Numbered from the stretch's first letter, positions 534-36,115 are shown. The stretch is DNA of 64,000 bases from Kudoa neothunni (GCA_964304625.1 OZ199840.1:3485631-3549630); one strand, 5' to 3'. Numbers and translations: made by a program. The notes: generated by a model not told the origin, from the sequence alone.

Positions 534-602
534 CCGAAAATTCAGTATCCGAAAAGAAAATGCTAGATCCCGACATTTTCGGATAAACGGGGCTCGACTG
601 TA
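534..602. mobile_element. Solo terminus of a pogo/Tigger-like element
   Basis: ...TTCGGATAAACGGGGCTCGACTG-TA, the reverse complement of a CAGTCGAGCCCCGTTTATCCG-type TIR followed by TA; partner end not found in the window. Confidence 0.4.
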
Positions 603-10019: not shown

Positions 10020-10688
10020 TCATCTGGAATTTTGGGAATGTGCATTGTTGCTTTGACCTTGAATGTAGGATGGAGGGTCCAACTGTTGGGCGAGGTAATC
10101 GTCGTAGATCGGTGGCATTGCATAAGGCGCTAGTTCAGCGGTCAAACCACCATAAACGTTTGCAAGGGCATCTCTTAACGCTAAAATCAGTTAAATACTA
10201 ATTAAATCAATAGATTATTACAAATGTGACTGGTTCTTTGATTGAATCTCCTAGGAGGAAGGGTAATAAAACGTCTGCTGTAACGCCTTAATGCTAGATA
10301 CACCACCAAACAAACCAAAAATATTATAAGCATAATTGTCGTTGCGTAGAAAAATTTATCACCGCTAACTAAAATTTAAAAATTTTTTGTTTAGTTAAAA
10401 ATCTCACTAATTAAAAACAAGGTACTCGATTGACAGCTGTTGCAACATTCCAAAAGGCGAACATTTTCATGACAGTTTTTGAAATTACATCCAAGACGAA
10501 TACAGTCTCGAATGATATTAGCGCTATTCTCATAACATACACACACTAAACAAGGATCTTCTTTGTATGGAAGGTAATACTCACCGAATTTGATTAACGA
10601 ACCTACTGAATCTAGGCATCCTATTAGGGAAGATGAACTTTTATGGTACATGACTACAGACTACAGAGGGGAAGAGAATACCTTGCAT
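10020..10688 (-). CDS. DGCR2/IDD-like single-pass membrane protein: 10-Cys VWC domain, TM, two PPxY motifs (array member 1)
   Basis: Exons 10620-10426 (GCLDSVGSLIKFGEYYLPYKEDPCLVCVC..C..C..C..CCNSC), 10368-~10231 (TM TTIMLIIFLVCLVVYLAL then RRYSRR), 10180-10020 (..MPPIYDDYLAQQLDPPSY..stop). First exon/signal peptide unresolved. Confidence 0.75.
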
Positions 10689-10873
10689 GATACGTCTTTT
10701 CAATCCTTACTATAATTTCAATTGGTTTATTTAAATATAAACCTCGTAACGAGCTTTATATTTAGTCAGATTAATGACTGAACTAAACAAAACCTAGTTT
10801 TAATTGAATTTTACAGTGTCATATAGCTTTCAAAACCAACTGAAACCCCTCAGGTACTAGGATAATGTGGATC

Positions 10874-12133
10874 CAGTGGGTGGCAGGTAATACGTACTTT
10901 TGCTTTCTCATATACAATTTACTACTTGTTGAACATATTACTTAAGTTGACGTTCATAAACTTAATTTGGTTGAGTTTTTATATCTAAAAAATAATTTTC
11001 CAACAAGAAATCAATAAAATCTTGTACTTCTAACGCATCGTTGTGTAATACGCATCTTTTTCCCTGAAATTGACTTCAAAATCACTTTCAGGTACTACTT
11101 GATTTGTATGTATGGTTGATATAAATCTTCATAATATGCTTATAATCAATAAAAAAGACGATGCAATAAAATATTTGAAGTTAATATAAAAAACTTAAAA
11201 CCACACCATTAAAAATTATGTTGTTATTTTCATATTAGTTTTAAGTAGTAACCTATCCGCGAAATTACAAATTATGGAATTATATGAAAATGGAACTATA
11301 AATATTAAACAACTAAACAAACGATGAATCCGACGAAAAATCTGCGAATTGATTACTTGAATAAGGTTAAATATTTCAGAGTTATTCCTCATTGAAAATT
11401 ATTTTTAAACGTAATGAGATTGTGAAGAAAATTATGTAAAATGTCTATGATGTTAGCTATGGTTGGTTTTAAGGTTTTAAAGAACAGTTTAATCTGCATA
11501 GGTTAAACTTCTATAGGGATCCGAGAATCGTTGGTGAATGTACGCCAAAAAATAACCCTAAAAATTTATAAACTCGAGATGAGGTTGAAATTTAACTAAG
11601 ACAAATCATGATTCAATTTTGTTGCAATTCTCTGTACAGGAAATATTAAAAGTAGCGAAAGAAGTCTTTTCGGTTGAACAGGGCGATTTTCAACCACTTA
11701 AAATATTATTAAAGTATCACTTTAAAAATATTACATATCGAAACAAAGACGATGAAAAAAATAATTAAATTTTACAGTTATCCAAGAGACATTAGTACAT
11801 CCTATTCAGAACCAGTCAATTAATAAATATCTAAATCACAAAACCATTTAGATGTCTCAAATGTCTCAAATAAGGGATTTAAAACAAAAAATGGTTCTAT
11901 TTATTTCTAAAAATAAAATTAAAACTTAGAAGATTTGCGTAACATATACATGGAGTACAAGAAACAAGTTAAATTAATAGATGCCCTTTAAAGTAAATTA
12001 TTACAATAATAATCAAAGAAAATTGAATGTTGAATGTACGCATGCGCATAAAATGCATATTACCCCTCTTTGCTAGTTAATTCGCATTTTTTCTCCGATT
12101 CAAAAGGGAATGCGTATTACCCGCCATCCACTG
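10874..12133 (+). mobile_element. pogo/Tigger-like element, internally deleted
   Basis: TIRs CAGTGGGTGGCAGGTAATACG / CGTATTACCCGCCATCCACTG-TA; remnants KLQIMELYENG and SYGWF*GFKEQFNL (CENP-B-type HTH). Confidence 0.8.
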
Positions 12134-13364
12134 TATAAAGAATAGAATTATGTAAATAATAATAATATTTGAAATTTAAACATTACAGATTAAATACTTA
12201 GACAAGTAAATAAAAACAAGTTCCTTTGAGAACTTAATTTGTATTGAACATTAAATTAATAAATTGATAAATAATTATTTTGATACACAACTAATAAAAT
12301 ATTGACGTAAAATAATGTAAAAATATACCTTATTTTGTGATGAATATTGTGATAAATATCGTGATAATTAGAAATCATTTCACACTTATCAGTATTTATA
12401 ATATAAAGAAATCGTGAATCTATTATCGTATCCATTTGTCTGCAGGTGTAAATATACATAATATGATCAACATATTGTGAGGATGGCCCCTTTTTCGCAT
12501 TTCTTAATTGTAGTTGTTGATATTCTTGTTAATATGGTATATTACTTTGATATTATATTTAAATAAAACAACAAAATGTTCTTTAAGACAATTAAAATTT
12601 TTTTTAGCAATTTTCGATTGCGCGCCAATTATCCAAAATTTTAATCCTATTGATTCATTAAAATAAATAGTCATAGCTTCAATATTGAGATTAAATAGAC
12701 ATTTCGTTACAAAAATTGAAATTATTTACTATTTAATTTCATTAAATCAATATTGAAGGGAAAACAACGATTATTTTTGGTAATAAAAAAGACAGAGTGT
12801 TAATCTGAAGATTTATCAAATTTATCTCATAACTTTATATAAATCCGTTGTTTATGGTTCTCAGGCATTGGGTCGCTTGACATCAACTTGGATGGGTATT
12901 AATAAAATGTTTAATAATTATATCAATTTCCCACAAATTTTAATGTAATGTGTCAATAATACTTTAAATATAATTATATTAATTTTTGTATATTTCCAAA
13001 CACATTTAATACCTAACATTAAGCCAATCTATATACTTTTTGAATATTTATGTATATTACTCAGATTATCATATAACTTGAAGAGTATACTCCGCTAACT
13101 TGGAAATATAAAAGGGTAATATTGAATTGGATATATTAAGTGCTAAATTTTAACAATTTATGATTTATGAATTATACATATTTATAATTTAAATTTGCAT
13201 CATTTGTAACCATAAGCTAAAGAAATAGAAACTATCAAATATTAAAATTCATCTTAGATTTTAAGCTAGATATAGTAACGTAGTAATTTTGATTTTTATT
13301 TAAAAAACAACGCTAGTTTAAAAAATATAGCACTAACGTAGAACCTAACATTGTCTAATATTAA

Positions 13365-14446
13365 CTCTTGGAACTCCGAATTTAATTCATTGATTGAAAA
13401 AATTTAAGTTGCTCATTCTGTTGAATTTCCAATAATTTTTTATAAAATATCGAAAAATTGGAGCAGTCATTCAAAAAATTAATGACATACACATGGTGCT
13501 AAATGGCAACATTGGAACGCGGCTTATTTCAATGTGTGGGGGTGCGGATATATTTGTTTTTAACCAAGAAATTACTCTTTCATCATCATCATCATCTGAA
13601 ATAAAATATTAAATTATTGATTACTATTTAAATAGTCCAAACAGCAGTTTCTGTTTTTATTGAGATACAAATGGATATTACACTTGATGCATATATGTTC
13701 AAATAATCAATCATTGAAGAACCGGTTGAGATAAATGAAACATTCAAATATAATATCCTCAGCTTGTTCAAAAATGTCAGTTGTTTCAATATCATTGTTT
13801 ATTTAAATTTTCGCGTTCATTGTCTAATTTAAACGATAGTTGTCTTACTCCCCATCACTAGAACAATATTCGGATACAAAACCACCATATTGACTATACA
13901 AAATGGAATCAGGTTCCATTCCAACAACTGATTTTGGCCCACCTGATAATAATATGATTTTTTAAAAGCCTGTTCTGTTTATTCCTCTCCCATTTTAATC
14001 ATAATCCATTCCGAAGAATATAAACACACTTAAATCTTAAATCGAGGGCCGAACGTTTCCCTGTGACGACGCTCGCTTTACTCGCTGGCCCTATGTTACC
14101 AAACGGCAACAAGGATTACTCTGTCCCTATAGTACACATATCAAAACATATTTTCTCCGTAGATCCATTTTTAGGATAAACTTATTTAATATTATATGTG
14201 TAAATTTTTTAATTTTATTGAAACCTCAAAATTCCAAGTTCAATTGCAGGATACTTTTAGCCTTAAAGTTTGATATTCATCTGTATTTCTCTTGATATAA
14301 AACATATAAATTTTTATAATTCATTTATATAAAATAAACTATATTGTTATAATAAAGATGGATTTATAAAATGTAATTTAATGGTTAAAACACTCACAAA
14401 ATTAAAATGTTGCCATTTGGCAGCGTTGGCGTTGGAGTTCAAAGGG
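13365..14446. mobile_element. Non-autonomous piggyBac-type element
   Basis: TTAA flanks (13361-13364, 14447-14450); imperfect TIR CTCTTGGAACTCC / GGAGTTCAAAGGG; inverted subterminal motif AAATGGCAACATT at 13501 and ~14407-14419. Confidence 0.75.
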
Positions 14447-15143
14447 TTAAATAACCGTTTAGTTTGAATTCTTAACTTAATTATTTAATGTTCTGTCAGA
14501 TAAATAATATTCTCAGCAGGATATAATAACATTATTGAAACCAAATAATCAATAGCTTGATAACTTGAACTAAAAAGAGAAGTAAAAAATAATATATTCG
14601 GCCAATGAATCAATAAATATATTTCGACCTGATTTTAAATTAAAAAAATGTGGCGTTATAATTTATTGTTTAAATATTAATTTTCTGTAATTATAACCAA
14701 TATGTTTCATAAAAAATAATAAATTTGTTTGTGACATAAGTTTAAATTAAATTATTAAAAAATTAACATTAGGTAATCAGTTTTACGCAATTTCCTCAAA
14801 ACCGCGAAAAAATGTGCAAAATCAATGCGTCATGTGCTCACAACATGCATGCATAATTTCGAATCTTTATAAATTTTGTAGAAATATATACTCTTACTTC
14901 ATATATTTGTTATACATCGAGCTATTCAAATGGAATTGTATATATACATTTAAATAACCGGGAATTATTGATTCTATCAAGATTATTAATGAATTTTATC
15001 CGATTTGATTGTTATATACAAAATTTCGCTAAAAATAGATTAATTTAAACATTGATATTTACTTAAGAAAAATATAAAGGTATGATAATTAACTAGCATC
15101 TGCGAATAAATATAATATTGATATATTAGATAAAAAAGTATAA

Positions 15144-15963
15144 TTAGACACAATTTTGTTTTGGTAGAGGAAATGAATTTTCTCCTTTTAATTCATTTGT
15201 GGTGACTAATGAGGAATAATGTGGAGGTTCTTCATTGTGTACAATGTAGGGTGGAGGTTGGGGTTCAGAGGGTGAATCGTAAGGATAATGTGATATCGGT
15301 TCGAAGTCAATGGAAAGCAGCGGTTGTACGGGAGGGTCACCAGACATCTCATCTTAATAATGTAAAAATGAACAGAGCAGTAGATTTCGTCGAAAATTAA
15401 TACCATCCACTTGTTGAGTTCCAAGTGTGGATGTCTTTTTCATATGACAGCACTCATGATACACTGATATACAAAATAATATGAAGGCGAAACCAAGCAG
15501 AGCACAATAAATATTCCAGCCCATGTATTCAATGTCATTGCGCCGATTATTCCTTCTAGGGATGTGATAATTTGTGACATCACCTTACCAAGAAGTTATA
15601 TAAGAATTAGCCTAGAGGTCGAACCGACAAACAACGTTTAGATACTAGTGGTATTAGTTTTGTTGCAACAATGTTCCTGTGCGTATTTACTATCCAAATA
15701 AAAAAAATTAGATCCGCAGACCACATTAGAGCAAAGCGTTCCTAAATCAAATTTTTGACGGGAACAGATACACTGCACACATGGCAGATCTTTATTCATC
15801 ACGTAATACTCATTCGACCGAACTGCAGTGTTGTCTGGTTCAAAACAAATATACGCGTCTATTGATGTAAAAATAAACATCGCATTAAACATTGAGGAAT
15901 TCAATAACAATATTAACCGGTGGGAAGTAGAAAATAATTCAACAGTAACACTAATAGAAGCAT
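15144..15963 (-). CDS. DGCR2-like membrane protein: signal peptide, 8-Cys VWC-like domain, TM, two PPxY (array member 2)
   Basis: Four exons, all introns phase 1: MLLLVLLLNYFLLPT|DAYICFEPDN..PCVQCIC..HCC|..MGWNIYCALLGFAFILFCISVYHECC..|..QPPPY..EPPHY..stop. Confidence 0.85.
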
Positions 15964-16334
15964 CAACCACGAGGCTATATTAAAAAGGGCTTATGTCACT
16001 GAATCCGTTTTATTAAGGAAGCGGCTATTCATACGAGACCGTATAATCCCTTCTCGGGGCCATCTATTCTTGCGTCGATGAATACCTTTTTTCCTACTTT
16101 AGATATTTTGAATCTGAATTTAAAAATATTTGATTACATTTTTTTCCTATAAAATCTTGAATTTTGAATTCTTATAAATTGTAATTTTAATCTTTTCACG
16201 CCGAGATTTTTTTGACTGAGAAAAAATATTTGATAACATATATGACAATTTTAAGGCAAAATAAATCATGTGTATCAATTTTGGGCTTGATCATGCTAAA
16301 ATAAAAAAGTCACATGCATGATGTTATATAGCAT

Positions 16335-17075
16335 CACTCGGCCGTCCCAAATTTTCAAAAACGGGAGTCACCAAAGTACGGCCCTCCGATACATTCAATC
16401 CGGCCTGCGGCGTCCCCCCTTTTAATTCTATTGTGCTTATGCGTACTTATTTGTATCGGTTCGCTTGAGGATTGCCGTTAAATTACTTTTGCAGGTGAGT
16501 ACTGATTAAAATTCTTCATTTAATTCCTTATAGTATGTTTTTAAATTTAATTAAAACTAACGCGAACTTGTCAGCTTTGCTTGAAGATTTCGCATCGAGA
16601 CGTTTCTTAATAAACTTTAACGTGGTGTTTAGCTCAAAAGAATCGAAATGGTTTTACTCTCAACCTTGTCTCATTTATAATCGTGATTTCCCCCGATTTT
16701 GATTTAACCTAATGTAGTATTGATTATTTATTTTCGGTTTGTAAGCCCCGTCCGTATACATAAATCTTGCCTGATGTTAGTTGGATCATCGTGAGTTTCC
16801 TTTCGCGCTGTTTTTGACCAAGTGGAGATTGAAAGAGTTAATTTTTCAGGTAAATCGATAAATTAAGTTAAATTTGATTAAAAAAATTTCACGTTTAATG
16901 CGAAAATAAGTATATATTAATCGCTTTCAAATATTAATGTGACAGGAAGTCAGATTAAAAATTATAAGTGGTCGAAATTAAAATACCAATATTTTTAAAA
17001 AAAGGTTGGAAACAGAATTTTTTTCAAGAAAGAGTGGGACGCGATGAAAACAAAGATTGGGAACGCCAAACTAGA
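16335..17075. mobile_element. Degenerate hAT (Charlie/Buster-like) non-autonomous element
   Basis: CGGCCC/CGGCCTGCGG subterminal-like motifs at ~16340-16410; 3' half homologous to 110-530. Boundaries approximate. Confidence 0.55.
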
Positions 17076-18865
17076 CGTAGTTATTAATCTAATCTTTCTG
17101 GTTGATATACGTATGTTTTTTGTCATTCATTAAAATTGCTCACTCGTTGTTAGTCGTAATATTTTAAATGATGTCATGTTTAAATGATTTATTCTATTAA
17201 TGATCGTTTATAATCGTTCTATCCAAACTACATACGCATTATTTACTACATTGGTAAAAACATAATTCTACTAAAAGAAAATCACTGCCACCCATATAAA
17301 TTATAGATTTATTTAATATTTAGCTAATAAGAGTTACAAAATAATTAAATAAACTAGAAATAAAGAAAATTTTTAATAATTATAGACAAATCTATCCTCT
17401 ATTTAAGATCGGCTCTAATCGCATATTCTCGGGGTTTATATTTTTTTCGAAATTCGATATGAATTCGTCTACAAATTTCTTTTAAATATTGCGAATAAGT
17501 TTTTAAATGCATTTGAGATAAAATAATGCAAGAAAATTGTGGGGCCATATATGATCCCAAAAGCTCCAAGTTTATAGTAAGTTCCGGACCACTCCACTCG
17601 GAAGGTTAAAAACAGATAAACAAACATTTGACCAAAAATTAATTTTCGAAGATGCGATATTCATTAACCCTGAATTATAGGTAAAGCTGCTCCCCTAATT
17701 TATGACTACATTAAGGTTTACTATACCAAATATTTTATATCGATTTAAAGTTTATTTAATAATTATATAAATTTATAAGAGTTTTATTGAGAATTAGATT
17801 GTAAATATGATGTTCTTCTCATAATTAAAAACTAAATTTAAAGTATTATTATCGTAGAAAATCCAAATCTGAACATTTTCCCCAAATTAATTAATCAAAC
17901 CTTAATTCATACAAAAATTATAAGAAACTATATTTAATCCAATAAGATATATTTAAAATTTCACGATATAAACTACCAATCTTTATCATAAATTAACCAA
18001 TAAAAGTAGTCAAAATATGGACTAAATTAAAAATATGAATATTTTAATAAAATAAACAATTTAAAAACAAAAAAATGTGTTTATAAGTAATCATACGTTT
18101 ATTCGTTAGGATTATACAAATCCCGCTGTGTGGTGTGAGAAGCTATTAATCGAAAATAATTTAAGAACAAACATCAACTTATTTATTTGTCATCTATGCG
18201 ATGAAGATTTTAAATACATAAAAAGTTTCCACGACCTAATTAATTTATTTTTATGTAAAAAATTGTATTAAAAATATATTATTTTATTCAAAAATATAGC
18301 TCTATTCGGGCGACAATAATTTCAGTTGACTTTTGGGCATAAATCGTGCTTATTTGCCATTATTCTCCTAAAACTTAATAGGATAAAACTGTGTATTGGT
18401 TTTATTGATGAAGAAGCAGATCCAATAAAATATTAAATAGAACTTTCATAAACTAAAATTATATTCTATAGATTATTAAATTTTATAATTAACAAAATTA
18501 ATCAATTCATAAAATCCATAACTAAAATTTGAAACCTATATAGATATTACCAAAAAATGTATCCTCTTTATTAAATTTATTTTTAAATTTTATTATAAAA
18601 ATTCTTACGTAATAAGTCGTCTCTTCTGTTAGAATTTAGAATGGTATTAGTTCATTTCTTTGTATAAGATTTTGGATTATAGAAAATACCTTTAAATAAA
18701 TGTAAATATGAAGCAAATATTACAACAATTTAACATATATCAAGAAATAAAATTTTACATCAATTTTCTGAAATCTCTATTTCTAACCTATAATATATAA
18801 TAAGTTATTATGAACCACTATTAGAGGCTTGCAGAAAACGAATGAAATGAAAAACGAATAAAAAA

Positions 18866-19674
18866 TTATTCTGGAGGATCTTGCGTATCTTTCCTATTAG
18901 ATGTATTAACGTTATCTAATGTTGAATATTCAGGTGGTTGTTCGCCTTCGACAGCGTAGGGAGGGGGTTGTGGTTCCGGTGTCAAATAAATAAAAATCGG
19001 CGGTGCCAGTTGACAATCATTTTCGGGCTGAGTATGCATTGGTATTGGTGATTCGTTAGAATTTTGGTCTAAAAGATTAGAAATTATCTTATACATTAGT
19101 TCCATATATAGTGGTACTATTTGGTAGTCGGACATCAGGGTTGAGTGAATTACTCTTGTAATTATATTGGAGATAGATGAACGTACCATAGATTGCCAGC
19201 GCTAATAATACGACACCTAGTGTCATAAGCATGTGTCGACTTCTTGTTTTTCTGTCGTTAATTGCGTGATGATTTGTTTTTGTATAACCTTTTTCTGGAG
19301 TACTCCCTAGACAGCCAAGTAAACATGGAATTTCCTATTCGAGTGATAATTTAATTACTAATGGTGATGGTTTCGTTGCAACAATGTTTTCGTGCGTACT
19401 TGCTATCCATCCCAAAAAGATTGAATCCACAATGAACCTTCACGCAAAACAATTGACGATCATCTATTTTTAAACAGGGACACTGAACACATGGAGTATT
19501 CCCATTTTCTACATAATAATCAGGCGAGCTAACAGTTGAATTGTCCGGCTCAAAACATATTAACGATTCCGTACGTACTACAGTAACATCATACTGAATG
19601 AAATTGAAGATTTAAAATGAAATGTTACTTAAAGTAGGTAGAAATGAGAAAGAATATAAAACAATTTCCAGCAT
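18866..19674 (-). CDS. DGCR2-like membrane protein: signal peptide, 8-Cys VWC-like domain, TM, two PPxY (array member 3)
   Basis: MLEIVLYSFSFLPTL|..ICFEPDNSTVSSPDYYVENGNTPCVQCPCLKIDDRQLFCVKVHCGFNLFGMDSKYARKHCC (exon 19577-19359, missed by the ORF track)|..MLMTLGVVLLALAIYGTFIYL..|..QPPPY..QPPEY. Confidence 0.85.
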
Positions 19675-21769
19675 CTATCAACTGGCTATATTCAAGCAGA
19701 TGTATAGCCAATGAATCTATTATATTGAGATTCAATCTGATTATTAACGTGCACTAATAATGATAAAATTATTTATTTATTTGAGGAATTTCTTATACAG
19801 AAAATATTATTATATATTAAAGCTATTAGTAGTTTTTGTGTGACCATGAAAACGTTAATCAGGCTGGTTACTAGCTCAGTGATTATTTAAGTGTAAACCT
19901 CAAATAAAGAGTGTTTGAATAAGTGATTAAAGTGTCGTGATAACGAACATTTAACTATCTGATGTCAATACTATTATATTAGAAATAATAACAGTTTATA
20001 TGAAAACTCTTTCTCGATATCTCAATGATAATAACCGTTGGCTTCAATAAAAGTTTCCTATCAATTAAATTATGTTTGGAGTTTAAATTGGTTTATTATC
20101 CTGAAGAATGACATTCCGAGATCCAATGAACGTAGTCAAATCCACAATAGACTTTTTCATAAATTATACCTTAATTTATACAAAAGTTTATCATTTATAT
20201 AAAAATGGGAAAATGTCCAAAAATAATTCATTATTTGATATATATTTTTAAGTGGATAAAATTAATACTTTTTATCGTTTTGTAGCATTTTTATCAACCA
20301 TGTAAAATCTTTTAAATTGTCATATTTATAAATAATATTCCTTCTAATATATTAAAACATTAAAACTATGTATTCCATCAAGAAATTATAAATTTTTTTT
20401 AATGAATTTGATAGTATTTAATGTTTCAAGCATACGTTCGTCGAAGATATGTATAATAAAAATATTTAAGTGACTTTGTTTATCTATTGTCTAGTTTCAA
20501 CTTTATCTTTACTGAATTTATTGATTTAAATAAAACAGCTATTCAAACCCAACTTATAAAATGAATTCACGTATTTTTGAAATTTCTTTAGTTATGATCA
20601 TTCCCCGAGAAGTATAAAGCAATGTTACTCTATTCGTACGGCGTAAGAATAGCTGGTGAAAATTTGGACAATTTTGATGGAACATGAAACTTTATCATGA
20701 CGAATGATAAGGGATGTTGGAGCTCGGATAATCTCTAAGGTCAGCGAGAGAATGATTAGTAGTTAGAAATCACTTTGCATATAATATATCCAGACAAATT
20801 TGTCCAACTTTTTTTAAATGTCTTATTTTTTCATTTTTACTTGTTGAAAGGGTGAATAATCGCAAAAATATGTTTCAAAACTAATAAATTATTACAAATT
20901 CACCAAAAAAGGAAATATAATCGTGATTTATTTCATGACGAAAACTCTTCAAATAGAGGTTCTTATCATTAGGGAAATGCTTTATTTCCAATTAAAATAT
21001 GCGTGGTGTAAGTTCACCAAAGGCAAGTTAAAATTATACAATTTAATCGTTCATTCTTCAAGCCATGAAATACAGAATTTCAGGCTAAAAATAACATGCC
21101 TAAATTTATATAAATCAAGACTTTTATAATGAAATGTTTTAAATGAGAAAATTTTTTTTTATTTTTTGCATCATGAATTGCAACGCGCAGTCTTATCATG
21201 TCCACAGATTATTTTGGAATTTTCGCGAGGCGTGTTGTGCATGCTGAAATTCTGAACTATTAAATTATATAATAGCTCGTTGAGGTTAGAGAGATCAATC
21301 GTTAAGCTATCGTTACAAATGGTTATTTAATATTCAAAAAAATTTTATTTTAGTTAATACCTAAATAAATAAAATTCTAATTGAAAATTATCTACTTGAC
21401 TAATTTTTCTTTATTTTAATGGTTGAATTTTAGTTCATAAAAATATAAAGTCATCTAGGTATAGTTATTTTGTTCAACCATCGCGTAAATGGCTGTAACG
21501 CAATTATTTGAAGTTAATGGAATTGAACCGACTCAAAAACAAAGTTTGATGAATTAAATTAGTAATAATCGCATTTTCGAGCATCACTTATCAATGAAAT
21601 AGTTTTCATTCTATCGAAAAATATTGTATATCTCTAATTTAACTAACTTTAAGTAGCGCTTTTCGGAATGAATACTTTTTCCTACCGAAACTATCAAAAC
21701 CACCAAAAGAAATAAAATGTTTTGCTCTACAATAAAAGATCTTATTCGAATATAGGAATTTTTCAGCAT

Positions 21770-21923
21770 ATCGACTAAGTAACGTCATAACATTAAAATT
21801 TCTGAGTAAATTATAAATTTTGATATATAATTAAATATCAGTTTGGGTTTTACAAAAAATCTTGCTTTTCCTAATTTTTCCGACGAAAATATGACCGGAT
21901 ATCCGATTTGGTCGGCAATGCTG
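21770..21923. repeat. hAT-like terminal fragment, dispersed repeat (also at ~48715-48865)
   Basis: Shared TTTCTGAGTAAATTATAAATT, ATATAATTAAATAT and TTTTACAAAAAAT; ends GGCAATGCTG / GGCAACGCTG (CAG.GTTGCC-type TIR). Confidence 0.6.
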
Positions 21924-23565: not shown

Positions 23566-24399
23566 CAGTCAATGACCGGCATTATCCATTTTTTAAAAAT
23601 CAACACAATGTGAATAATCAAATGTACAAGCTATATATAATATTTTTTTAATGTTTGTATTAATGAATTTGGATATTAATAATATAATAAGGTTGAGAAA
23701 GTTCGAGATTGTTAATCACGTGACTAGTATGTTTAAGCACTTTTTTCGGAACATTTTTGAAAGAATTAAATGAAATGAACAAAAATCAATTCAAAACATG
23801 GAATAATAAAATAAGTCCACAATATCTCCCCAAAAGTTGCCAATTTTTTTACTATAAAGAACCAGACATATCCTTCATATCCAACCCCTATGGCATCTTA
23901 AAAGACAAAAATAAATTTATTTAAATGATTGAACACAAGCCGATTATTGTTTTAATTTGCAAATTTATTAAAATTAATTTAAAAAAGTATCCAAGTTTGA
24001 CAAAAGAGATCGATCAATCATGATAGCGATGATGAAAATTAGATTTCAAAATATTTGTACGAATTTTTTGTGGCCGAAATAATAAATTATTTTATTTTTA
24101 AATTATAAAAATTATTTGTTTCTTAAATGTAAGCAATTTAGTTATATTAAATAGTTACGAATATTATTATACGGGCGCGCTAATTAGTACGTAAAACTAG
24201 GTGTTACCAATTTCACACACATTTTCCGCGATTCGAGAAGGATTACTTTAAAACGGTTGACGACTGTGCTTTCATTAAAAAAGTATTAAACGGTTTACCA
24301 AAATTTGCGTTTTTGAATTAAGTTATCTAGAAAATTATTGAATAATTTTCTGTGACAATCGCTCAGCTCAGAAAAGTACGTAAAACCGGTCACTGACTA
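23566..24399. mobile_element. Tc1/mariner-superfamily MITE
   Basis: TA-CAGTCAATGACCGG ... CCGGTCACTGACTA-TA inverted ends; repeated AGTACGTAAAAC at ~24186 and ~24375. Confidence 0.7.
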
Positions 24400-24460
24400 T
24401 ATATATACATATGTAATCAATAAAACAATTTTTTTATTTAACTAGAAAATATAGCTAATT

Positions 24461-25245
24461 TTAATTATATTTTGGTGGATGTTGTACATTTTTTTTATCG
24501 GGTTTATTTGTTTTATTTGATTTATCGTAACGAGGTGGTTCTTGATCATGAGCGGAGTAAATTGGTGGTTCAGGATGATATGACGAATCAGCAGGATTTT
24601 GAGTAGTCATTTCAAAGTAATTTGGTGGTTTGGGCTGTGTGTTGAAATTTGGGGAAGTTGAAGCTAAAAGTGAAACAATCATTAAATAAATTTTACATTT
24701 CAGAAATTTACTATTTTGATGTCGATTGTTCGAATTTGTAATATTTTTTTTATAAATCCATTCGTAATAAATCGAGAGTATAAATAATGCGAAAGAAAAA
24801 AGTATGAACACAGTAACATAAGTCCAATTTGAAACAGTTTGAATGTAATTTCCAAATTCAATTTCCTTTAGTCTTCTTTGAGGGATTTTTGCTAATCAAA
24901 AATCGATGTAGACCGTAGTAATATACATGTATATATACGTGTAGTTAGAATATATTTGCAACAATGTTTGACGGCGTATTTACTATAATATTGCATAATT
25001 TCAAAATAACAATGAATCGCTGAACAACGAATTTTTGAAGTGGAAGTTGGCTCATCGCAACGACACTGAAAGCACGGCAAATCTTTATTTACCACATAAA
25101 ATTTCCCCACTGGAACAGTAGTATTGTCTGGCTCCATGCAATGAAATGTCTCCGTATCTATATTCGTATATTATATAGGGATTCCTAAAATTATGCCACT
25201 TGTAGCTTGCAGTAATGAAAAGAAATATAGCACGATTTCAAGCAT
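24461..25245 (-). CDS. DGCR2-like membrane protein: signal peptide, 8-Cys VWC-like domain, TM, four PPxY (array member 4)
   Basis: MLEIVLYFFSLLQAT|..HCMEPDN..PCFQCRC..C..C..SKYAVKHCC|..WTYVTVFILFSFALFILSIYY..|PPNY, PPIY, PPRY, PPKY. Confidence 0.85.
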
Positions 25246-28200
25246 CTTTCACCAAATGTACTATAGAAGCTTAAGACAAAAGAAACTGTTCTATTGAATT
25301 CTAATCTGATTACTGCAACCGCATATGACTCTTGAAGTATTTGATGGTGGTTACTCATTTAACTTAATATTACTTTATACTGAAAGTTATATGATGTTTT
25401 CCATCGTTCCAACATAAATCAATGTATGAAATGAGAAAATGAAATATTTTTGTAAAAAACTGTCAATTGTAGAATACGAATAAGTCATTATATAATCGTA
25501 TTAACGAATTTTATCCATTTTATAGATGAATACAATAATACTATCAATAATAGTATGTCTCTAAAGGTCAACAGCCAAGATGGTAAAAATAGAAACATGG
25601 TTGTTTTAAATCATATTTCATCAAGCACTGGATGAATTAATAAGTATACTTGCAATAGTTATAATACTTTACATTGTTCAATCGAATAAATTTTTCTAAC
25701 TATAATAGTTAAAAACTTAAATTATTGATACGCTCCTGGGTTTTTCTCACTCATATTAATAATAAAATTGGAATTTATTAGAATAAAATAGGCAATAATC
25801 CATCAAATTCCTCCTGTTCATTCAAAATTTTATTTATAACTACTATTTTAAAATTTTTAAAGAAATCAAGGTAAGTTAGCGATTCATTTTTAGTTGTTCG
25901 TTATATGAATATAAATATATGTAAACTTCGTTTCGTAATTTTCCTTGTAATAATCCAAACTTAGTATATTTGATCCATTATTAGGCCCTGAAAAATTCCC
26001 CCTAAAAAATTACAGGCATAATGTATAAAGGGTTTTTAAATATCACCACAAGGGCCCCATTTAAAATGACTAATAAAATATGGGTAATTTAAAAAAAACA
26101 ACGCAGAATAGTATATATATTGTAGAATTTATTGATATAAATTTTTATCTCCATTATATTGAAAATTACATTTGTAGAACAATGCCATATTACCGGTTTC
26201 CAAACATGATAAATGTTTCATCATTGAGAAATTTCCTACAAGAAAAACATGAAAGTTAATTTAAACGAGCATGCGAAGATAAAATAGTAGTTTTCTATCT
26301 AATAAGTTTTAATTAAAGTTGAGAAATGCATAATAAAAATAGTTTTATTATTTTGATATATCTGTTCAATTAAATGTAAATAATTCGAATCAAGAGAATA
26401 TTATTTTTAAAAAATTAATATGCGTATAAAAATAAAAACAATTAGTTTATAGTCAAATTTTATCAAATTGAAACACCATAAAATTATATAATTCCATAAA
26501 TATTACACTTGTGACTGTATTAACTTTTAAAATTTCAGAATATGACGAAACCTGTTATGTTATTTAATGTAATTTATTATTACTCGAACTATTAAATGAG
26601 TGATGTTTATTTTGATAACATATTATTAGTCGATATAATATATAATGGTATTTTACATTGGTTTAAAAATTTAAAACGGAAAATTAAACGAGTGTATTAT
26701 AAAATATTTCTTCTATGACTATGACTAAAACGGCTCATGATCTCAAAAGGAATGTTTCTGTGGTCGTAAAAATATTATTGTATTTTTTATATCTTCAGCT
26801 GTTTAAAATTTATATTTTTTGATATGAATGATAACAAAATAAAATTTTCTTTTAATATTAGTTTTAATAGCACCTCCAACGCTGAGCCATCCTAGTTTCT
26901 GAGCTTGAAATTGTTTTAGATTGAAACTCCATTCGATTTTTTCTATGCTATTAATAATACACCTTATGAATACGAAAAAGGTACCGTACATTACAACGGA
27001 TGGATATATTTACTACAATAACGCTTACATCAAACTTTTGATTTTGAAAATATAAATAACAATTAAATTACTGTAAATAAAATAATCAGTTTATTTTTAT
27101 TTTTAAATTGACAAATTACGTATGAATTTTGTCGTAATTTTGTTAAAGAATTTATGTCTGTATTGGATTTTAAATAAAATTAATTATAAATATCACAGTT
27201 TTTATCACGAATGGTGTATTCACTAACACAAAGGTCACCAAAGTACAGTCTGGGTCTCCTCATTAAAACTCACTTCGCGTGTGTGCACATGAAACTATGT
27301 CAGTTCTCTTGGAGACCGTCTGTACTTGATTATAGTAGATGTGTGTTGATTAAAACCACTTATTTAATTCCTTATGATGGATTTATTGATTTTAAATTAA
27401 AATTAAAAAAAAATCAACACATTAATATGGCAATGTTGTGAATGTAAAGCATACCATTCGACAGGTACACTTTTCAATGATTATTCGAAGGAAATGCATC
27501 CAATAATTTAAAATACTTAATTAATTAAAACTTAGAATTTAAAATTAAATAAATAAAATAAAAACGTTCTTTAATTTTTTATAAAAAACAAATGAAACTA
27601 TTGTTTATCTTAGGTATTATAGAAAATATTTGAGTTTCACTTTTCCAAAATAAATAGAGATTTATAGTTAGGATTATTAGACTGCTTGCTGTTTAAATTT
27701 AGTGCCTGGGGTTTTCAGGCCTTGTAAAACCAATAATTTATAATTGAAATGCAGTAACTCTATTTTTCAACAAATTAAGTAAACTATTTCCAACATATTA
27801 TGTAATTATTCGTTTAACACCATTATTAAAATAATAATATAGTCCAAAATATTATGGATGGGCCGGTAGTTAATCTGACAATAGTAAAATTTTGATCAAT
27901 CCTTTCAATATATTTATACACTAACATGTAATTATACTGCAATAATTCCACATATTTAAAAAATAACAATTAGGAGATTTTTTATTTAATAATTCCATAA
28001 TTAATTATTATATTTAATGAATTAAAAAACTACAATTAAATATAGGTTATCAAAATGACGCTTATTACGAAGATATTATTGGATTGTTTCATTCGAGAAT
28101 AATTAAATGCAAATAAATGATTTGTTTTATACTGTAAATCCGCTAATATTCATTTGATGCCAATCTAAATTACTTTCTGTTGGTTTTAATTTCCTAAAAA

Positions 28201-28406
28201 ATAAAGAAAACCATTAAAATTTGTTGAGATAAAAATTTTAATTATTATAAACATATTATGAAGCTATTAATCTAAATATAATATTAATAATGAATAATTA
28301 ATTCAATTGATTCGTTATGAAAATAATTTATTCGTTAGTTGTACAAATGAGAATTATCCGTTTGAATGCAACCCGAAAAGCCGATTGTTTTATAATTAGG
28401 TCCATT

Positions 28407-31399
28407 ATGTTAGGGTGTGAAATTATCTACTTTTTGTTAGGTATATAATTGGTTTTATTATAATATTAATTCTTAATTTAGTAGTATTTATCTCAAATAA
28501 TGTTAATGCTGTGGACACATCAAGTCCTTCAGCTACAACTACTCCTCCAACAGAAACCCTTTCTTATCGAATTATGAAGGATAGTAATGATAATATAGAC
28601 AAAATTAAAATCAATCTTGGTGGTTCTAATTATGCTACCAACAAAAAGTGCCGATTAATGAGATCAAATGAGGCCGAAATCATAACGGCCGGTACGACAC
28701 CAACAGTAGCCAAGTTTATAGATATCAGCGGTTGTCAAGCCACTGAAAAAACTGGCGCAAGTGATAAATGTGTTGTCGATTGTGACACTAATGTGAATAT
28801 AATCACATACGATATACTTTCTCCGAGAACTAAATACCTATACGTAAATGTGGATGCTTCTACTAATGCTGTTACAGCAACTGGAAAGGAACAAGGCGGA
28901 AAGGTATTCGGATACCCAATACGTAAAATACTTAAACTAATTATATGCAATTAATCAATCAAATTTAGTTTTATTGGCTAATCCTCAAGTCGCCGTAACT
29001 ACAGAGACTACTGCTACCAACCTTAAAATTGAAGCTAAAACTTGGACACATGTGGATTGTCCAATTTATTACAAAGATATTAAATATGTTTCAGGCACTA
29101 AGGGTAGTACTTATAGTGGTGCAAATACATTAAATCAAGTCGAATTTGATTTATTGTTACCACATTACGAAATGAGATGCGAAAATTATCCCAGTTTTTT
29201 CTATGGCATGCCAAATGAGTATATGAAGAAAAATATTGCTATTTATGAACCCCAATATTATATTGTTGCTAAAGGTGATGATAAAATTGGAATTAAATTC
29301 ACCAATACCCCATCATCAGAAATATGTCTCTTCAGTCTTAAAAATGGCCAAACTGGGGAAGGCGCTCAAACTTATACGTCTGTTTGTGGTGGAACCGCTA
29401 AAAGCTGTTATGCCCCTTGTAAAGATGTCGTGTTAGATGGTATTGCAGATAAAAAAATCTACGATATTTTAATCCAAACCAGATATCACGACATAATGGC
29501 CACTGGAGATAAATTAGAGGGATACCAACAGAAAAAATTCGGTAATCGTTTACTTAATATCTTATCTTATTCATTGTCCTAGCTATTTCTGAGCCATCTG
29601 GTGGATCTGAGCCATCTGGTGGATTACTAACAGATTACACCAAGGTGGGTGTTACTATTAATGGTGTCCCCTTCAAAGCAGGTGATAATGAACCAAAATT
29701 TAGCACATGCACTCTCAGACACTACTTTGCTGATAAACCTAAACAAACATCATTAACTGAGACGAAATGTAAAGAAGGCGAGTCACAAGAAACAAATTGC
29801 AAAGATGATTGCAGTAATTACGTGATCCAAGGACTTGCAGCAGGAAAAGCATACATGGTTGAAATTGGTTCTACAGGTATAACGGGCCTGAATGATTTCA
29901 AAGAATATGTATTCATAAGAACGAGTAAGTTATTTAATTCAAGTTTAAATTAATTTCGAACTATAAAGATCATAATACTGAAAAAAACATATCAAACTAC
30001 TGAACCAAACCAAAACAGATACAACCAGCTTCACTTACAGCCGTTGGCGGAACAGCAGAACCGGCAATAACAGATGAACCTACTTGCGAATATTTCGTAA
30101 GTCCTGCAGAGCTGAATAGTTTTTATCCTGCAAAATGTACCAGCAGTAATCCATGTAGAGGATTGTGTAGAGACCAAGTAACAATAGAAGACCTCGAGCC
30201 AAACACACCCTATGATATCAGAGTGATTTTCACATAGAGATTATGCAATTACTGAGTATAAAAAATGTAAAAACAGGTTATTAAACTTAAAATTTACTCT
30301 TTAGATTTTAATTATTTAAACTAGATCTAACAACATTGACGATAACACATAAAATCAAATCAGATGGTTTGATATTGAATGCACAATTATCCGCAGTAAA
30401 TCCAATTGCAACTTGCAGTTATACTGTGAAAGAGAAGAATGGAAACGATTATAAAGACGTTTACACTTGTCCAGAGGTTACGAGAGTCACCACACCAGCT
30501 TCTACGGCAGCACCGAAATCCCCTCAAAAGGTTGCATCAACATTCAGTCGCACAGAATCAAATATTGCTAGAATTGCAGCGTCTACATTATCGGAAGATT
30601 CAACTATCCAACTAGCTGGTATTGCTAATAATATATCCTCAAATTCAAACACTTGTTCATCAAATCCTCTTTGCAGTTCCATTATATTTTCCAGTTATGA
30701 TGCAACAAAGGAGTATAAAATATTAGTTACCGCAATCGGAAAGTCAGCCGAAAAAGACTATATAATGGAACCAAGTATTAAAAAAATTATAATCCTTAAG
30801 AAATCAGTTATAAATTAGATTTATATTAGGTGCACCAAAAGAAAACCCAACTGACTCTGCTAAGTTAATAGTAGTCACTATTACACGCGATGGTGACAAT
30901 TTTATTATAAACTCTCATCTTCCAGCTAGTATGAATGACCGATCAAAATGCAAGTGGGAGTTACGTAACAGTAGTATCAAGTCGAAATGCTATTATAAAA
31001 TCATGCATGGGAGCTGTTGTGGACGGATGCTCTACATTTGAAACCTGTAAAGAATTTCGAATAAATGGTTTGCCCGACGGAAACGATTATCACTTGACTG
31101 TATACAGTGCTAAAGATTCTAAAATTTTTGGTGGCGCTGACATCCAACAGGGTACATTATTTTTTATATAAATAATTAAATTTTATATATCGTAGGAGCG
31201 AAGAGCAGCTCAGGGTGAGATTATTCTTATACTTTGATTTGAATTAACTTTGTTTAGTGGAAAAACAAAGCTAATGTACACATATTTGCATTATTAATAA
31301 ATGAAATAAATTATTTATAGAATAATTATTGTATCGGTTGCAGGAGTCTTGGTGATAGCGATGGTTGGTGTCGTGATAATGAAGAAGAAAAAAGATTAA
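28407..31399 (+). CDS. Type I surface protein with ~6-7 Cys-decorated FN3-like repeats; frameshifted (pseudogene or assembly error)
   Basis: Signal peptide MLGCEIIYFLLVVFISNNVNA; repeats end in FN3-like motifs (YVIQGLAAGKAYMVEI, VTIEDLEPNTPYDIRV, FRINGLPDGNDYHLTV); TM IIIIVSVAGVLVIAMVGVVIM then KKKKD-stop. Stops at 30001 and 30235 and a frame change near 30970. Confidence 0.75.
29588..29623 (+). repeat. Perfect 18-bp tandem duplication encoding SEPSGG x2
   Basis: TCTGAGCCATCTGGTGGA twice, in frame. Confidence 0.9.
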
Positions 31400-32604
31400 T
31401 TGATTTTCATTGAATTTTGGTTATTAACTGATTAAGTTACTTTTAATGAGTTATATTTATATTATTTATACCATTTCAAACTATATGTTACATATAAAAA
31501 TGATATATACTTTATTGAAATTTTGATTTTCTCTTCTATATAATTAAAGGTACGTTATTTCTTACAATATAAATACAATGTTTGCTTTCTTCGGTCGATT
31601 TCTAAAATGACCTACTATATAATATTTATCATTCAAAATAGTATGCATATAGTTAAAATAATTTTCTACTAAACTTTGGTTTATTAATTTATTTAATTTT
31701 CTTCTTCGACTATAATCTATGCACAAATAAAAATATTTTTAAAAAATAAAATACGTATAGATGATTAAATTAATTAAGAATACTTTTTAATATTTAGGGG
31801 GAGTTTATTTATAATTTTTTTTATTCTGTATTTAAATAAGCATATAAAAATAGTTAACTACCGCATGCTCATTTGAACAAATTATCTAATAATAAATTTT
31901 GCTAAAACTTTTAAATTTACTTCAAAATCGAAATTAGACCATATTTATATAGTTATTTATAGTAAATATAATTTTCGTAAATATTTTAAACAAAAATGCA
32001 ATCCAGAAAATTTATTGTTTGTTCGCCTGCAAGAATATGTTTATTATATTCTTATCAACTTTAACTCTTAAAACTTAAGTATACCAAATAGACGATGGAG
32101 ACGAGAAAATAAAAATGAATTGTATCTGTAATTAGATAATTAGATTTTTCGGATTGACGTAATTAAATCTCATCACGTAGATTGTTTTATTTTCTAACTG
32201 TAAAATTTCAAAATTTCCCGTCTTTCGTATTTTCTCATTCAATAATGAGGAAAAGAAGGATTTTCAATGATATATTTGAATTATTAAATTTATTTCCTTT
32301 ATATAATGAAATATGTGCTCCGAAAAATGTTGAAATTAATTAAAATCTTCATTAAATTTTTTATTAATTGATTTTCGATACTTTAGAAATGATTTTTTAT
32401 AAAATATAATGAATTTTTCTGCATTATGATCATGTCACATCACATTGGGAAAAAAGTAAAAAAAGATATTTGAGATTATGAATGATCATCAGTTGCGCTC
32501 ATAAAACCCAAATTGAAAATACAAAAGATATATCCAGATCTCTGTTAAACAATATAGTTGGATGCAGTTACCAGATAATCTTAAACTTTCGGAATTTGTG
32601 CTGT

Positions 32605-33311
32605 TTAATATAAGTAATAATATGTTTTCTGAGCTGGTGGTTGTTGTTCGGTGTCGTTGGTTTTTCTTCGATCACCTATATAAAATAAAACTATGTACAA
32701 GTGTGTAATCAAATAAAAACATACGTAAATTATTGTCATTAATTTGTTTCTGATGTTTTTTCCACAACACCACTCCAGTTGTCGCCAATAATATTGCCAT
32801 AATAATACCACAAGTTACTGCAATGGAGATCATTATTATTTTTATCTTTTTCCATCTTTTTCTTTGTGATACCAGGATGTCTTCAGAATCGTCTGTATAT
32901 CATTATTGTTATAATAAGAATCATAAATGTTAAGGTTATATCGTTAAGATTACTTTGGTCATAATCACAACATTGTGTTAGAGCATAGACACTCACTCCT
33001 TGAGGGATGTTTGCGCCGCATTCCAACTCTTGACACACTTCTTCGTTACTAGAGAGGCACAAACACATCCTACAATTTTGTATGTAATTCGGAATGTAGA
33101 ATTCTCCCTCAAAGACCAAATAGCCATCAGGTTCTCGACACGTATACGCTCCTGGAGGTATTACTGTAGGGTGCAGATATTCAAGTGTTTCTATGAAATC
33201 TTCATACAATTTAACAGCTATAATAGTAATTAAACGAATTCACGTTAAAATAAAGATACTGGATAAATTAATCAGTCCAATGAAACATATGAACCTGATC
33301 ATGGCGTTCAT
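32605..33311 (-). CDS. DGCR2-like membrane protein: signal peptide, 8-Cys VWC-like domain, TM, short Tyr-rich tail without PPxY (array member 5)
   Basis: MNAMIRFICFIGLINLS|..TCREPDGYLVFEGEFYIPNYIQNCRMCLC..C..C..SVYALTQCC|..IIMISIAVTCGIIMAILLATTGVVLW..|..QQPPAQKTYYYLY-stop; phase-1 introns. Confidence 0.85.
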
Positions 33312-34648
33312 AATTTGTTTTTAATTAACGCCCTAGTGTATCTTTATGCAGTTTTATGAATGGAACAGATTAGAATAAGAGTTTTATACGTATAAATCCT
33401 ACAAAAACTTCTAATTCATTCGAATTACAAATAAAAAATGTATTTTTTTATTCATTGAAACACTAAATGTAGATTGGTTCTTTCAAATTTTTCAGAATAT
33501 AAACTCCACAATATAAGGTTATATCAAGTGAAAATTGAAAGATTTTTGTATTTTAAAGATGAATCATATATAATATTATATCATATTTAATATGTGAAGT
33601 TCATCTCTGAATTTGAACGAAAAACAACCTCTGTTTCGACCACGCATTTCGTTCACATTCTTGTTAGATATTTTTCTGGTTCAATATAAACCGATCTAAC
33701 CCCCTAATATAAACCAAGCGTGCAATACATAATTGTGTTTATCTACTTCTCAAAGTAACAATTGAAAGAGATTATTTTTCTACAACTGTCGTTAGGGGGT
33801 TTTTATAGTACCGTTTAAAATACTGGTTTAGACTCGAATAAATCAACAATTAAAGAGCTCTCAACTCACTTATAATTTCATAATTCTCCATTTCCCAGCG
33901 AATTACTTCATTATCCTTGATATTTGTTTGTTGTGATTATTTGGAGCAAATCAATGAATTAGTTAATAAAGGATTGCGTAATCGCTTTATTAGCAAAGTA
34001 CGAAATTGATTTAACTCATTACACTTGTAGAAAATAAATATTTTTTATTTATTTTAATTAGATATTAGTTGTTATAAAGTAATAAATAATTAAAACCTAG
34101 AATAAATGGTTTTGAGAAACAATATAATTTTTGGGATAACTCTTATAAAAAAGTGACTATTCCCGTAAATCCATCTAATCGCATGTCACCAGTTTTGACT
34201 TTATTTAATTAAAACACATAACAGATTTTACTTAATCTTCCGATGACCTGGAAAAGTGAATAAAAATGCGTCACTGACGCACTTTAAGCAACTATCCGTG
34301 CTCAATATATAAAATACGGATATTTCAAATAAACTGTTATCATCTTATTAATTATAAACAATAATTTTGTCGAAATAATATTAAATCTTTATTTTCAAAA
34401 TATGTGTGTTGATTTTATGATCTAACAACATTATTTAATGCAGACAATCGATTTCTCTTTCTATCGTATATTTTATCTGTAGGTATTAACATTTAATTAC
34501 AACTTTTGATGATATAAATTCGATTGTCACCTCTTCAACTTTTGTTTCAACATTAGCGGATTCAATTATTAAAGAACTAGGTTCGTCAAAGTTTTTAATG
34601 TAGGCGTATGGTTATCTCTTGAATCAACTCAAGAGTCTCAACTAGCTT

Positions 34649-35160
34649 GGACAATATGGCATAGTGGTGTTAGGTCTAGATCGCACACCCTGAGGTTGCA
34701 AGTTCGAAGTCTATTCCGGGCATTCCTGTACCCCTACCCCTAATCCGAGATTAAGTAGGAAGGCCGTAGTAACCTAATCGCAAGGATCCATGATTTACCG
34801 TGGCTTTGCTTTCAGCTGGGAGGGGAGCCTGGTGGAAGGGTAGAACTTGGGTGCTCATAAACGCCTGGGTACAGGAGGGAAATAAAACCCAGTAGGGGTT
34901 TCCGTAAAGCCGATACCCGTATTCAGACGACTTTCCTAGACTAATTCTGTATTAATCCAGGGTATGGTTGGGGTGGTTAACTCCGAAGCGAGGATGTTTA
35001 ATGGGTTAAAATCCCACAATATCGCATAAACGTAAGTCGCTTTAATATTTAATATGACGCTGCGATGCCTAAAACGTAAATGGAGAAGGACTAATCTAAT
35101 CTGCCCGAACTTCACAACCTAACAAGTTGCACCAGGGGTTTGATCTTGTAAACAAAAAAA
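34649..35160 (+). mobile_element. tRNA-headed SINE-like element with structured body
   Basis: GC-rich island; Pol III A-box TGGCATAGTGG (34657) and B-box-like AGTTCGAAGTC (34701); several internal helices; A-rich end; no clear TSD. Confidence 0.6.
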
Positions 35161-35618
35161 TCGAAAATTTCAGTTGTGAAGTCATTACTTCTCAATTGAC
35201 ATTTTAGGAGTTCTCATATTCGTCTACTCTAAGAATATTATTTTCTGACATAGTTAAATAGAGTGTCCTTAAGATTACTCCCCTTATAAAAACTTGAAAC
35301 ATCTAAGATTCTACCTTCAATGAGAGAAACATATTTCTAAAAATTCACCAATTTAAGAACACTGGAATCATCAAATGAAAACTTGTATCCCATTCACTAT
35401 AACTTGGGGTTCGGTCCGTCCACCGTACCGTTACAAAGTGAAATGCTTAGAATATAATAAAACTTATATAAAGCAAGAATATATTTTATACACTTGCTAT
35501 CTTAAAATTTACGTAAAAAACTAGTTGATTGCATGTTTTAAATATAAATGAAAACATTTTAAGCCGGTGAGCGCGAGTAATCAATATTCATAATTACAAT
35601 AAATCATAGAAAATCGAT

Positions 35619-36115
35619 TTAAAAACATTCAACAAGTGATTCATATGATGGCGGTTCAGATTCTGAGAGTGTGCTGAAATAGTGGTATGTTGAAGTACTT
35701 TCATTAGCGTCAAATTCAGGTGGGTTTGGTTGATCTTTGATTTTCAGTCCAACAACTCGATCATTTGAGGAGTATACAATTTCGCATGGAACCACAGATT
35801 CGTTCGCTAAACCAAAAATATAGGTTTAAAAAATACCTGTAGTCTACAATGAGTTATGTTACGTCTGATAGGAAACGGATAACCCAAGTTCACTGTTCCA
35901 GCACGATTTGAAAATGGTGAACTGGAATCTGATGACCTGCTGTGGTAGCATTTGATTGAATAGTACAATATCATTGGGGCCAGTATCATCGCAACAGCTA
36001 CCAACACTACGAATCCGAATCCATTGTCTACACTGTACATTTCCTCATATCCTGAGAGAAAGGTTTCCAGTTGAATATGTTTCAAGGTTGGATAAAATTT
36101 TTCGGTTCTATGCAT
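35619..36115 (-). CDS. Single-pass membrane protein with PPSY tail and no Cys-rich ectodomain (probable array member 6)
   Basis: TM FGFVVLVAVAMILAPMILYYSI; last exon reads ..PNPPEF..SEPPSYESLVECF-stop; splice phase of the last intron unresolved. Confidence 0.55.

Follow-up and report, generated by a model that had tools for sequence, protein, structure and literature searches.

What do the Cys-rich genes crowded on the minus strand of a 64,000-nucleotide stretch of the Kudoa neothunni genome encode, and what might their products do? The stretch, referred to here as the window, is C3:3485631–3549630 of a 40.3-Mb, AT-rich (~30% GC) animal genome in four contigs. An earlier, sequence-only reading had described a tandem array of six minimal DGCR2-like receptors, each with a VWC ectodomain, a transmembrane helix, and a tail carrying PPxY (PY) motifs, and had proposed that the ectodomains diversify, perhaps as a host-interface or variant-antigen system. 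The reading that we prefer, at a rough probability of 0.55, is that the predicted genes M1–M5 are five of 11 lineage-restricted paralogues and that M1–M4 encode PY-motif transmembrane adaptors or receptors built on a VWC-type ectodomain. We use M6 for the neighbouring sixth gene, L006–L011 for the family loci elsewhere in the genome, and L012 for a related locus from sequencing run SRR31175926, found on a 4-kb contig of 20% GC. Searches were run exon by exon, and the gene models are predicted from sequence; on these models, this is a real gene family, lineage-restricted and of conserved structure.

Five predicted genes with a common structure

The family pattern, C-x21-C-x2-C-x-C...C-x4-C...CC, has eight invariant Cys columns. 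In the six-frame translation of the window the complete pattern has five matches and no more, each on the minus strand (~10.6, 15.8, 19.5, 25.1, and 33.1 kb), and in 200 shuffles it never appears. Each of the five Cys-domain exons is flanked by AG and GT and is in phase 1, and in M1–M5 the exon order is Cys domain, transmembrane segment, tail, with all exon lengths compatible with phase-1 joining. The transmembrane exons reach 19-residue Kyte-Doolittle means of 2.1–2.8, and basic residues follow the helix. Upstream of M2, M4, and M5 lie short exons for signal peptides of 15–17 amino acids, each with a phase-1 donor and separated from the Cys exon by an intron of 42–96 nt. The predicted proteins of the family are ~160–210 amino acids long with one membrane span. 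Introns in the genes studied are mostly 42–63 nt, the longer ones reaching 221 nt, and the intergenic gaps across the array are 2.3–7.4 kb. The co-orientation, phase-1 junctions, and Cys spacing described in the sequence-only reading therefore all fit M1–M5; its four exons for members 2–5 hold for M2, M4, and M5, the signal-peptide candidate of M3 being weak.

The splicing of the individual models is predicted, and all of their exons are on the minus strand. In M1, the Cys exon (10426–10620) encodes a 10-Cys VWC-type domain (C-x21-CxxCxC-x10-C-x4-C-x4-C-x8-CCxxC), followed by a transmembrane exon (10231–10368; ATTIMLIIFLVCLVVYLAL, then RRYSRR) and a tail exon (10020–10180; MPPIY and DPPSY, then stop). 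No signal-peptide exon was found upstream of M1, where an in-frame ATG stands at 10651, 10 codons before C1. M2 starts with a signal-peptide exon (15918–15963; MLLLVLLLNYFLLPT) and a 59-nt phase-1 intron, followed by an 8-Cys VWC-like exon (15646–15858), a transmembrane exon recognised by hydropathy (15404–15583), and a tail exon (15144–15352; PPPY and EPPHYSSL). In M3, the weak signal-peptide candidate is at 19847–19799, upstream of an 8-Cys VWC-like exon (19359–19577), a transmembrane exon (19118–19306), and a tail exon (18866–19068; PPPY and QPPEYSTL); the donor chosen for the transmembrane exon is the best phase-1 choice, an alternative at 19183 shortening the transmembrane segment. M4 has a signal-peptide exon (25200–25245; MLEIVLYFFSLLQAT), a 42-nt intron, an 8-Cys VWC-like exon (24939–25157), a transmembrane exon recognised by hydropathy (24712–24891), and a tail exon with four PPxY motifs (24461–24663; PPNY, PPIY, PPRY, and PPKY). 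M5 likewise has a signal-peptide exon (33260–33311; MNAMIRFICFIGLINLS), with a 96-nt intron next, an exon with 8 Cys (32954–33163) that is most closely related to L006, a locus of another chromosome (52% identity), and a transmembrane exon again recognised by hydropathy (32725–32892); its short tail exon (32605–32675) ends in QQPPAQKTYYYLY and a stop. M1 alone in the window has 10 Cys, the extra ones being C7 and the C10 of CCxxC; in M2–M5 both of these are missing and eight remain.

A diverged VWC-type ectodomain

Evidence that the Cys domain is of VWC type comes from profile searches in both directions. A profile of all 11 genomic family members retrieved seven matches from 1.84 billion representative proteins. 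The best were a KCP-like (kielin/chordin-like) protein of Mya arenaria (3.7e-17), which itself matches Pfam VWC at 1.2e-28, and a protein of Tegillarca granosa (5.4e-12), and the stretches matched in KCP-like proteins are precisely their VWC repeats (13–27 bits each). In the reverse direction we used an alignment of 12 bona fide VWC repeats from the retrieved proteins, of which eight rows match Pfam VWC and four match VWC2L_2nd. Run against the whole genome in six frames, it found five places, all belonging to the family (L011, M4, M1 at window 10439–10618, L007, and M3), and nothing else. Comparison of the two alignments by hhalign gives a probability of 97.1% (E 5.6e-11) over a stretch spanning C1–C6. 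The Pfam VWC model found nothing when run against the whole genome, and the two members in the relative match it at E 0.005 and 0.03 (17.6 and 14.9 bits, below the gathering threshold of 27.6). A sequence profile search of PDB returned Crossveinless-2 VWC1 as its sole match, at E ~6.

Structure prediction points the same way, with weak fold matches. An AlphaFold2 model of the M1 domain has a mean confidence score (pLDDT) of 79, falling to 59–69 in the C-terminal third, and its nearest shapes in ESM-Atlas are NELL2, NELL2-like, mucin-like, and VWCE proteins (TM-scores by query 0.48–0.53); Foldseek and VIA-align of the model against PDB gave no significant match. The language-model look-alikes of the relative's VWC-plus-transmembrane open reading frame (ORF) are Crim1-like and VWFC proteins (score 0.83), which we treat as a lead only. 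In canonical VWC domains, C7 and C10 pair in one disulfide. All ten VWC cysteines are found in M1 and in the relative's two members, and the other ten genomic members have eight. On these matches the ectodomain, as first proposed, is a diverged VWC-type domain in which the N-terminal half is conserved and the C-terminal sub-domain of most members has lost both C7 and C10.

Kielin/chordin-like protein, Crim1, Crossveinless-2, and NELL are the proteins that the Cys domain matches best in sequence and fold, and Crim1 is also membrane-anchored. Canonical VWC proteins are, however, large and mostly secreted, with multiple 10-Cys VWC repeats and no PY tail, whereas 10 of the 11 genomic members here are without C7 and C10. 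Vertebrate DGCR2 (IDD, SEZ-12), the comparison drawn by the sequence-only reading, has the layout signal peptide, LDL, lectin, VWFC, transmembrane helix, and intracellular domain, the last with TVV as its PDZ ligand (PMC10362570); among the two-hybrid partners of WWP1 it appears as a PY-containing protein (PMC13133773, Table 1). It resembles the predicted window proteins in being a type I protein with a membrane-adjacent VWFC domain, one transmembrane helix, and a cytoplasmic tail, reported to carry PY motif(s), and the same VWC–transmembrane–PY order is found here. The LDLa and C-type lectin domains of DGCR2, in contrast, are not found: only the 15–17-residue signal exon precedes the Cys exon, which leaves neither space nor an exon for a lectin domain, and Pfam is blank there. 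Nor does any window tail carry DGCR2's C-terminal T/SxV PDZ ligand, the tails of M1–M6 ending in ...NSR, ...NCV, ...PPE, ...KYN, ...YLY, and ...ECF. DGCR2 is not among the matches of the family profile, an absence that is uninformative because a one-VWC protein could not pass that E-value threshold. The comparison is thus apt at the level of architecture, and the domain order stands; membership in a DGCR2 family is not supported, given the missing LDLa and lectin domains and PDZ ligand.

A VWC domain on a membrane anchor raises the question of ligand capture. One alternative is that the genes encode membrane-tethered BMP/TGF-beta sinks, a "mini-Crim1/chordin" whose VWC domain captures the animal's own or host BMP-type ligands and whose PY tail clears them, standing in for the secreted multi-VWC antagonists apparently missing from the compact genome. 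No further VWC exon in the genome is found with the VWC profile, the look-alikes noted above are Crim1-like, and the conserved half of the domain is the SD1 half (C1–C6), through which Crossveinless-2 VWC1 binds BMP-2 in their complex (3bk3). At least three TGF-beta-type ligand loci (C1:9613802, C1:2155671, and C1:591779) are present in the genome, and an endogenous class of VWC ligands therefore exists. Against such a sink, many VWC domains do not bind BMPs, the C7–C10 pair is lost in 10 of 11 members, and the exon-wise searches that found no other VWC genes have limited sensitivity. We regard this alternative as unlikely. A broader proposal, in which the usual secreted multi-VWC BMP regulators (of the chordin, CV2, and Crim1 type) are missing and the family is the organism's BMP/TGF-beta control system, consisting of ligand traps with ubiquitin-dependent clearance and M6 as co-adaptor, seems to us somewhat more doubtful still.

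PPxY tails and their possible partners

The adaptor or receptor reading that we prefer depends on the tails as much as on the ectodomain. There are two PPxY motifs each in M1, M2, and M3, four in M4, one in M6, and none in M5, whose tail is 23 codons long, so the PPxY tails originally ascribed to the whole array are present in all of its genes except M5. Ten tails together hold 20 PPxY motifs, against 0.9 expected from composition (5,000 shuffles, maximum 6). Tails rich in PY motifs, with 2–4 PPxY each, are found in 8 of the 11 genomic members, M1–M4 among them. Often the tail motif reads PPxYxxL, a sequence that satisfies YxxPhi as well. Juxtamembrane Cys residues in several family members (YHECCH in M2 and CKRCRK in L011, for instance) could be palmitoylated.

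This design has precedents. PMC5578492, citing Pei & Grishin 2012 for the Shisa-like group, describes PY-motif membrane adaptors, among them Shisa-like/STMC6, WBP1, VOPP1, TMEM92, and CYYR1, in which a Cys-rich ectodomain and a transmembrane helix precede a PPxY tail that recruits NEDD4-family ligases. The Shisa-like/STMC6 proteins are small and single-pass, with a Cys-rich N-terminal ectodomain and a PY-rich tail, and they share the design and presumed mechanism of the family described here; their ectodomain pattern is C*C*CC*CC, however, whereas here it is C-x21-CxxCxC-...-C-x4-C-...-CC, and homology was not detected. Commissureless, PRRG1–4, and yeast Rcr1 are short transmembrane proteins whose L/PPxY motifs bind Nedd4/Rsp5 and which sort partner receptors (PMC5578492). 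They show no sequence similarity to the family, and their ectodomains are a Gla domain or none. What is new relative to these known systems is the VWC-type ectodomain, placed on an already known PY-motif, single-pass adaptor/receptor design.

By analogy, the most likely mode of action is that the VWC domain would engage a partner in the extracellular space or a lumen, whether another ectodomain or a ligand of TGF-beta/BMP type; the tail, through its PPxY motifs, would recruit a WW-domain protein together with endocytic machinery; and the bound partner would then be ubiquitinated and internalised or sorted to lysosomes. In this scheme, the topology, any ligand, the WW-domain partner, and the outcome for trafficking are what we infer.

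Several observations weigh against this scheme. A NEDD4-type C2-WW-HECT gene was not detected in the exon-wise genome scan. Clear WW loci number three, two of them WW+FF genes (PRP40/TCERG1-like by eye) and one a lone WW of unclear class, and the single HECT locus (C1:5156818–5157778) sits in a 2,518-residue frame far from any WW match. Four further WW matches (C3:8568014, C2:981902, C1:9435725, and C1:4549330) are partial and may be intron-split exons. The search method itself works, since a control aimed at E2 enzymes recovered 17 pieces. With no NEDD4-type gene detected and the HECT locus unlinked to WW, coupling to NEDD4 is therefore something that we infer. A subgroup of three among the 11 members (M5, L006, and L011) has short tails that lack a PY motif. 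On the side of the ectodomain, Pfam scans of single window exons gave no VWC match at E up to 10, and the PDB structural matches are weak (Z ≤3.1), though dominated by FnI modules and VWC domains. M1-type members have no recognisable signal peptide in the upstream search, and the splice sites throughout rest on prediction. As a separate observation, the exon-wise searches suggest that the HECT/WW repertoire of the animal may be strongly reduced.

Could the membrane-bound form instead be a precursor? Basic clusters lie just outside the transmembrane helix in M2 (RRNNRR), M3 (RKTRSR), M4 (QRR), and M5 (QRKRWKK), and are possible convertase or shedding sites. Cleavage there would release single-VWC, cytokine-like ligands resembling the SVWC/Vago proteins of arthropods, whose one VWC-type domain contains 8 cysteines, the same count as in most members here. 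The clusters are not conserved in M1 or L007–L010, however, no Pfam SVWC match is found in the window exons, and the conserved PY tails argue for a role of the membrane-bound form. SVWC/Vago proteins also differ in being secreted, with neither a transmembrane helix nor a tail. Shed ligands of this type seem to us improbable.

Copies, neighbours, and selection

Counting copies by profile in the genome and in relatives gave 11 genomic members and a two-gene syntenic locus in one relative. The 11 Cys exons, a number stable on iteration, comprise the five in the window, a tandem pair on C2, two singles on C1, and two on C3. The pair on C2 (L007 and L008; C2:518310–523067) is a second tandem of two genes, with PPPY/PPKY in one tail and PPSY/PPGY/PPQY in the other. 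A juxtamembrane motif, Y-x-C/E-x-Y-K-K/R-N...N-x-Q-N-G, is common to L007, L008, and M4. Compared pairwise, the 11 Cys domains share 32% identity on average (23% when the Cys columns are left out), and they yield an unresolved tree. The only member found outside this genome is P0006, on L012; when the family alignment was run by word index against 5.8 billion proteins, P0006 was again the only return, and the limits set by the length window and word index make this weak evidence.

The related locus places the array in a wider context. L012 reads, in order, an ABHD17-type gene (567–1529, minus strand), an M6 orthologue, a VWC–transmembrane gene with an APPY tail, and a second with LPSY, and its gene order and orientation match those of the window, where the ABHD17-type gene is followed by M6 and then M5. 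It follows that the cluster is older than the separation of the two species, across which the M6 tail is 65% identical and ABHD17 70%; the VWC domains are only ~36% identical (best window match M1). The 10-Cys, M1-type genes of both species show no signal-peptide exon and have a Met 0–14 codons ahead of C1 (14 in L012 g3, 10 in M1, and 0 in L012 g2), the two in the relative standing at L012:2660 and L012:3252. M1-type proteins may be N-out type III membrane proteins.

M6 had been counted as the sixth member of the array. Its first exon (35863–36115, minus strand) encodes a Met, a Cys-free ectodomain of ~32 residues, and a transmembrane segment, and its tail exon (35619–35806, minus strand) contains PPSY and ends in EPPSYESLVECF and a stop. 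A genome search found M6 to be single-copy, and no similarity to M1–M5 was detected beyond the motif PPxY(S/E)SL. Membership in the family is ruled out by the missing Cys domain, the single copy, and this lack of similarity, so the array consists of five family genes and one neighbour. M6 is a separate conserved gene for a transmembrane protein, and it was already beside the array when this lineage and that of the one known relative parted. With its PPSYESL tail and an ectodomain that is short and Cys-free, it comes closer in design than M1–M5 do to Commissureless, PRRG1–4, and Rcr1. The intron-less ABHD17-type hydrolase gene (44432–45409, plus strand), which serves as the synteny anchor with L012, has one 70%-identical relative, on L012; otherwise its product shares ~49% identity with proteins from a wide range of animal phyla. 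No close nematode ABHD17 was among these, and a nematode origin was rejected on that ground. This depalmitoylase-like gene lies beside M6 in divergent orientation in both species, and any link to the possible palmitoylation of the family may be coincidence.

Two other features of the window lie outside the family. Between M4 and M5, a run of plus-strand ORFs at 28511–31171 (147, 202, 102, 160, and 78 residues) shows recurring Cys-containing modules and has no Pfam match; this plus-strand gene, at ~28.5–31.2 kb, is unrelated to the family. An ORF at 2798–3268 on the minus strand resembles, by eye, a piggyBac-type transposase fragment (...GGVDTLDQ...).

Are the ectodomains diversifying, as had been proposed? 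In the closest paralogue pairs (M2–M3, M5–L006, and L007–L008), the Cys exon is 52–57% identical at the amino acid level. In M2–M3 it is the best conserved part (54%, against 22% for the transmembrane exon and 37% for the tail). The ratio of nonsynonymous to synonymous substitution rates (dN/dS) for the Cys exon in these pairs is 0.22–0.36, with dS ≥0.95 and hence saturated, which limits the estimate. From this conservation, the low ratio, and the saturation of dS, it follows that the ectodomain is the most constrained part and that the duplications are old. The Cys exon is under purifying selection, and the proposed diversification is not borne out.

These results bear directly on the suggestion that the genes encode variant surface antigens or a host interface and that selection drives them to diversify. 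Low identity outside the Cys columns, and the ~36% identity of the relative's members to their best window match compared with 70% for ABHD17, would favour it. However, the exon that ought to vary is the best conserved; there are only 11 copies, mostly dispersed and anciently diverged; and neither hypervariable patches nor traces of gene conversion or of recent duplication were seen. We consider a variant-antigen role very improbable, and claims of antigenic variation are currently not supported by the family data. Least probable of all is that these are unexpressed, decaying ORFs or chance patterns, as the missing M1 signal-peptide exon and weak M3 candidate might hint, given intact frames, a phase-1 structure conserved in all copies, invariant cysteines, dN/dS <0.4, a syntenic locus in the relative, and a pattern absent from every shuffle.

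If the gene models are expressed, they would represent a previously unannotated, lineage-restricted family that joins the VWC module to a PPxY trafficking signal in its smallest form. Such a family would offer a natural system for studying the binding partners of a lone VWC domain and the control of receptor turnover by PY tails, and it would bear on how TGF-beta-type signalling is controlled in a very reduced animal genome.

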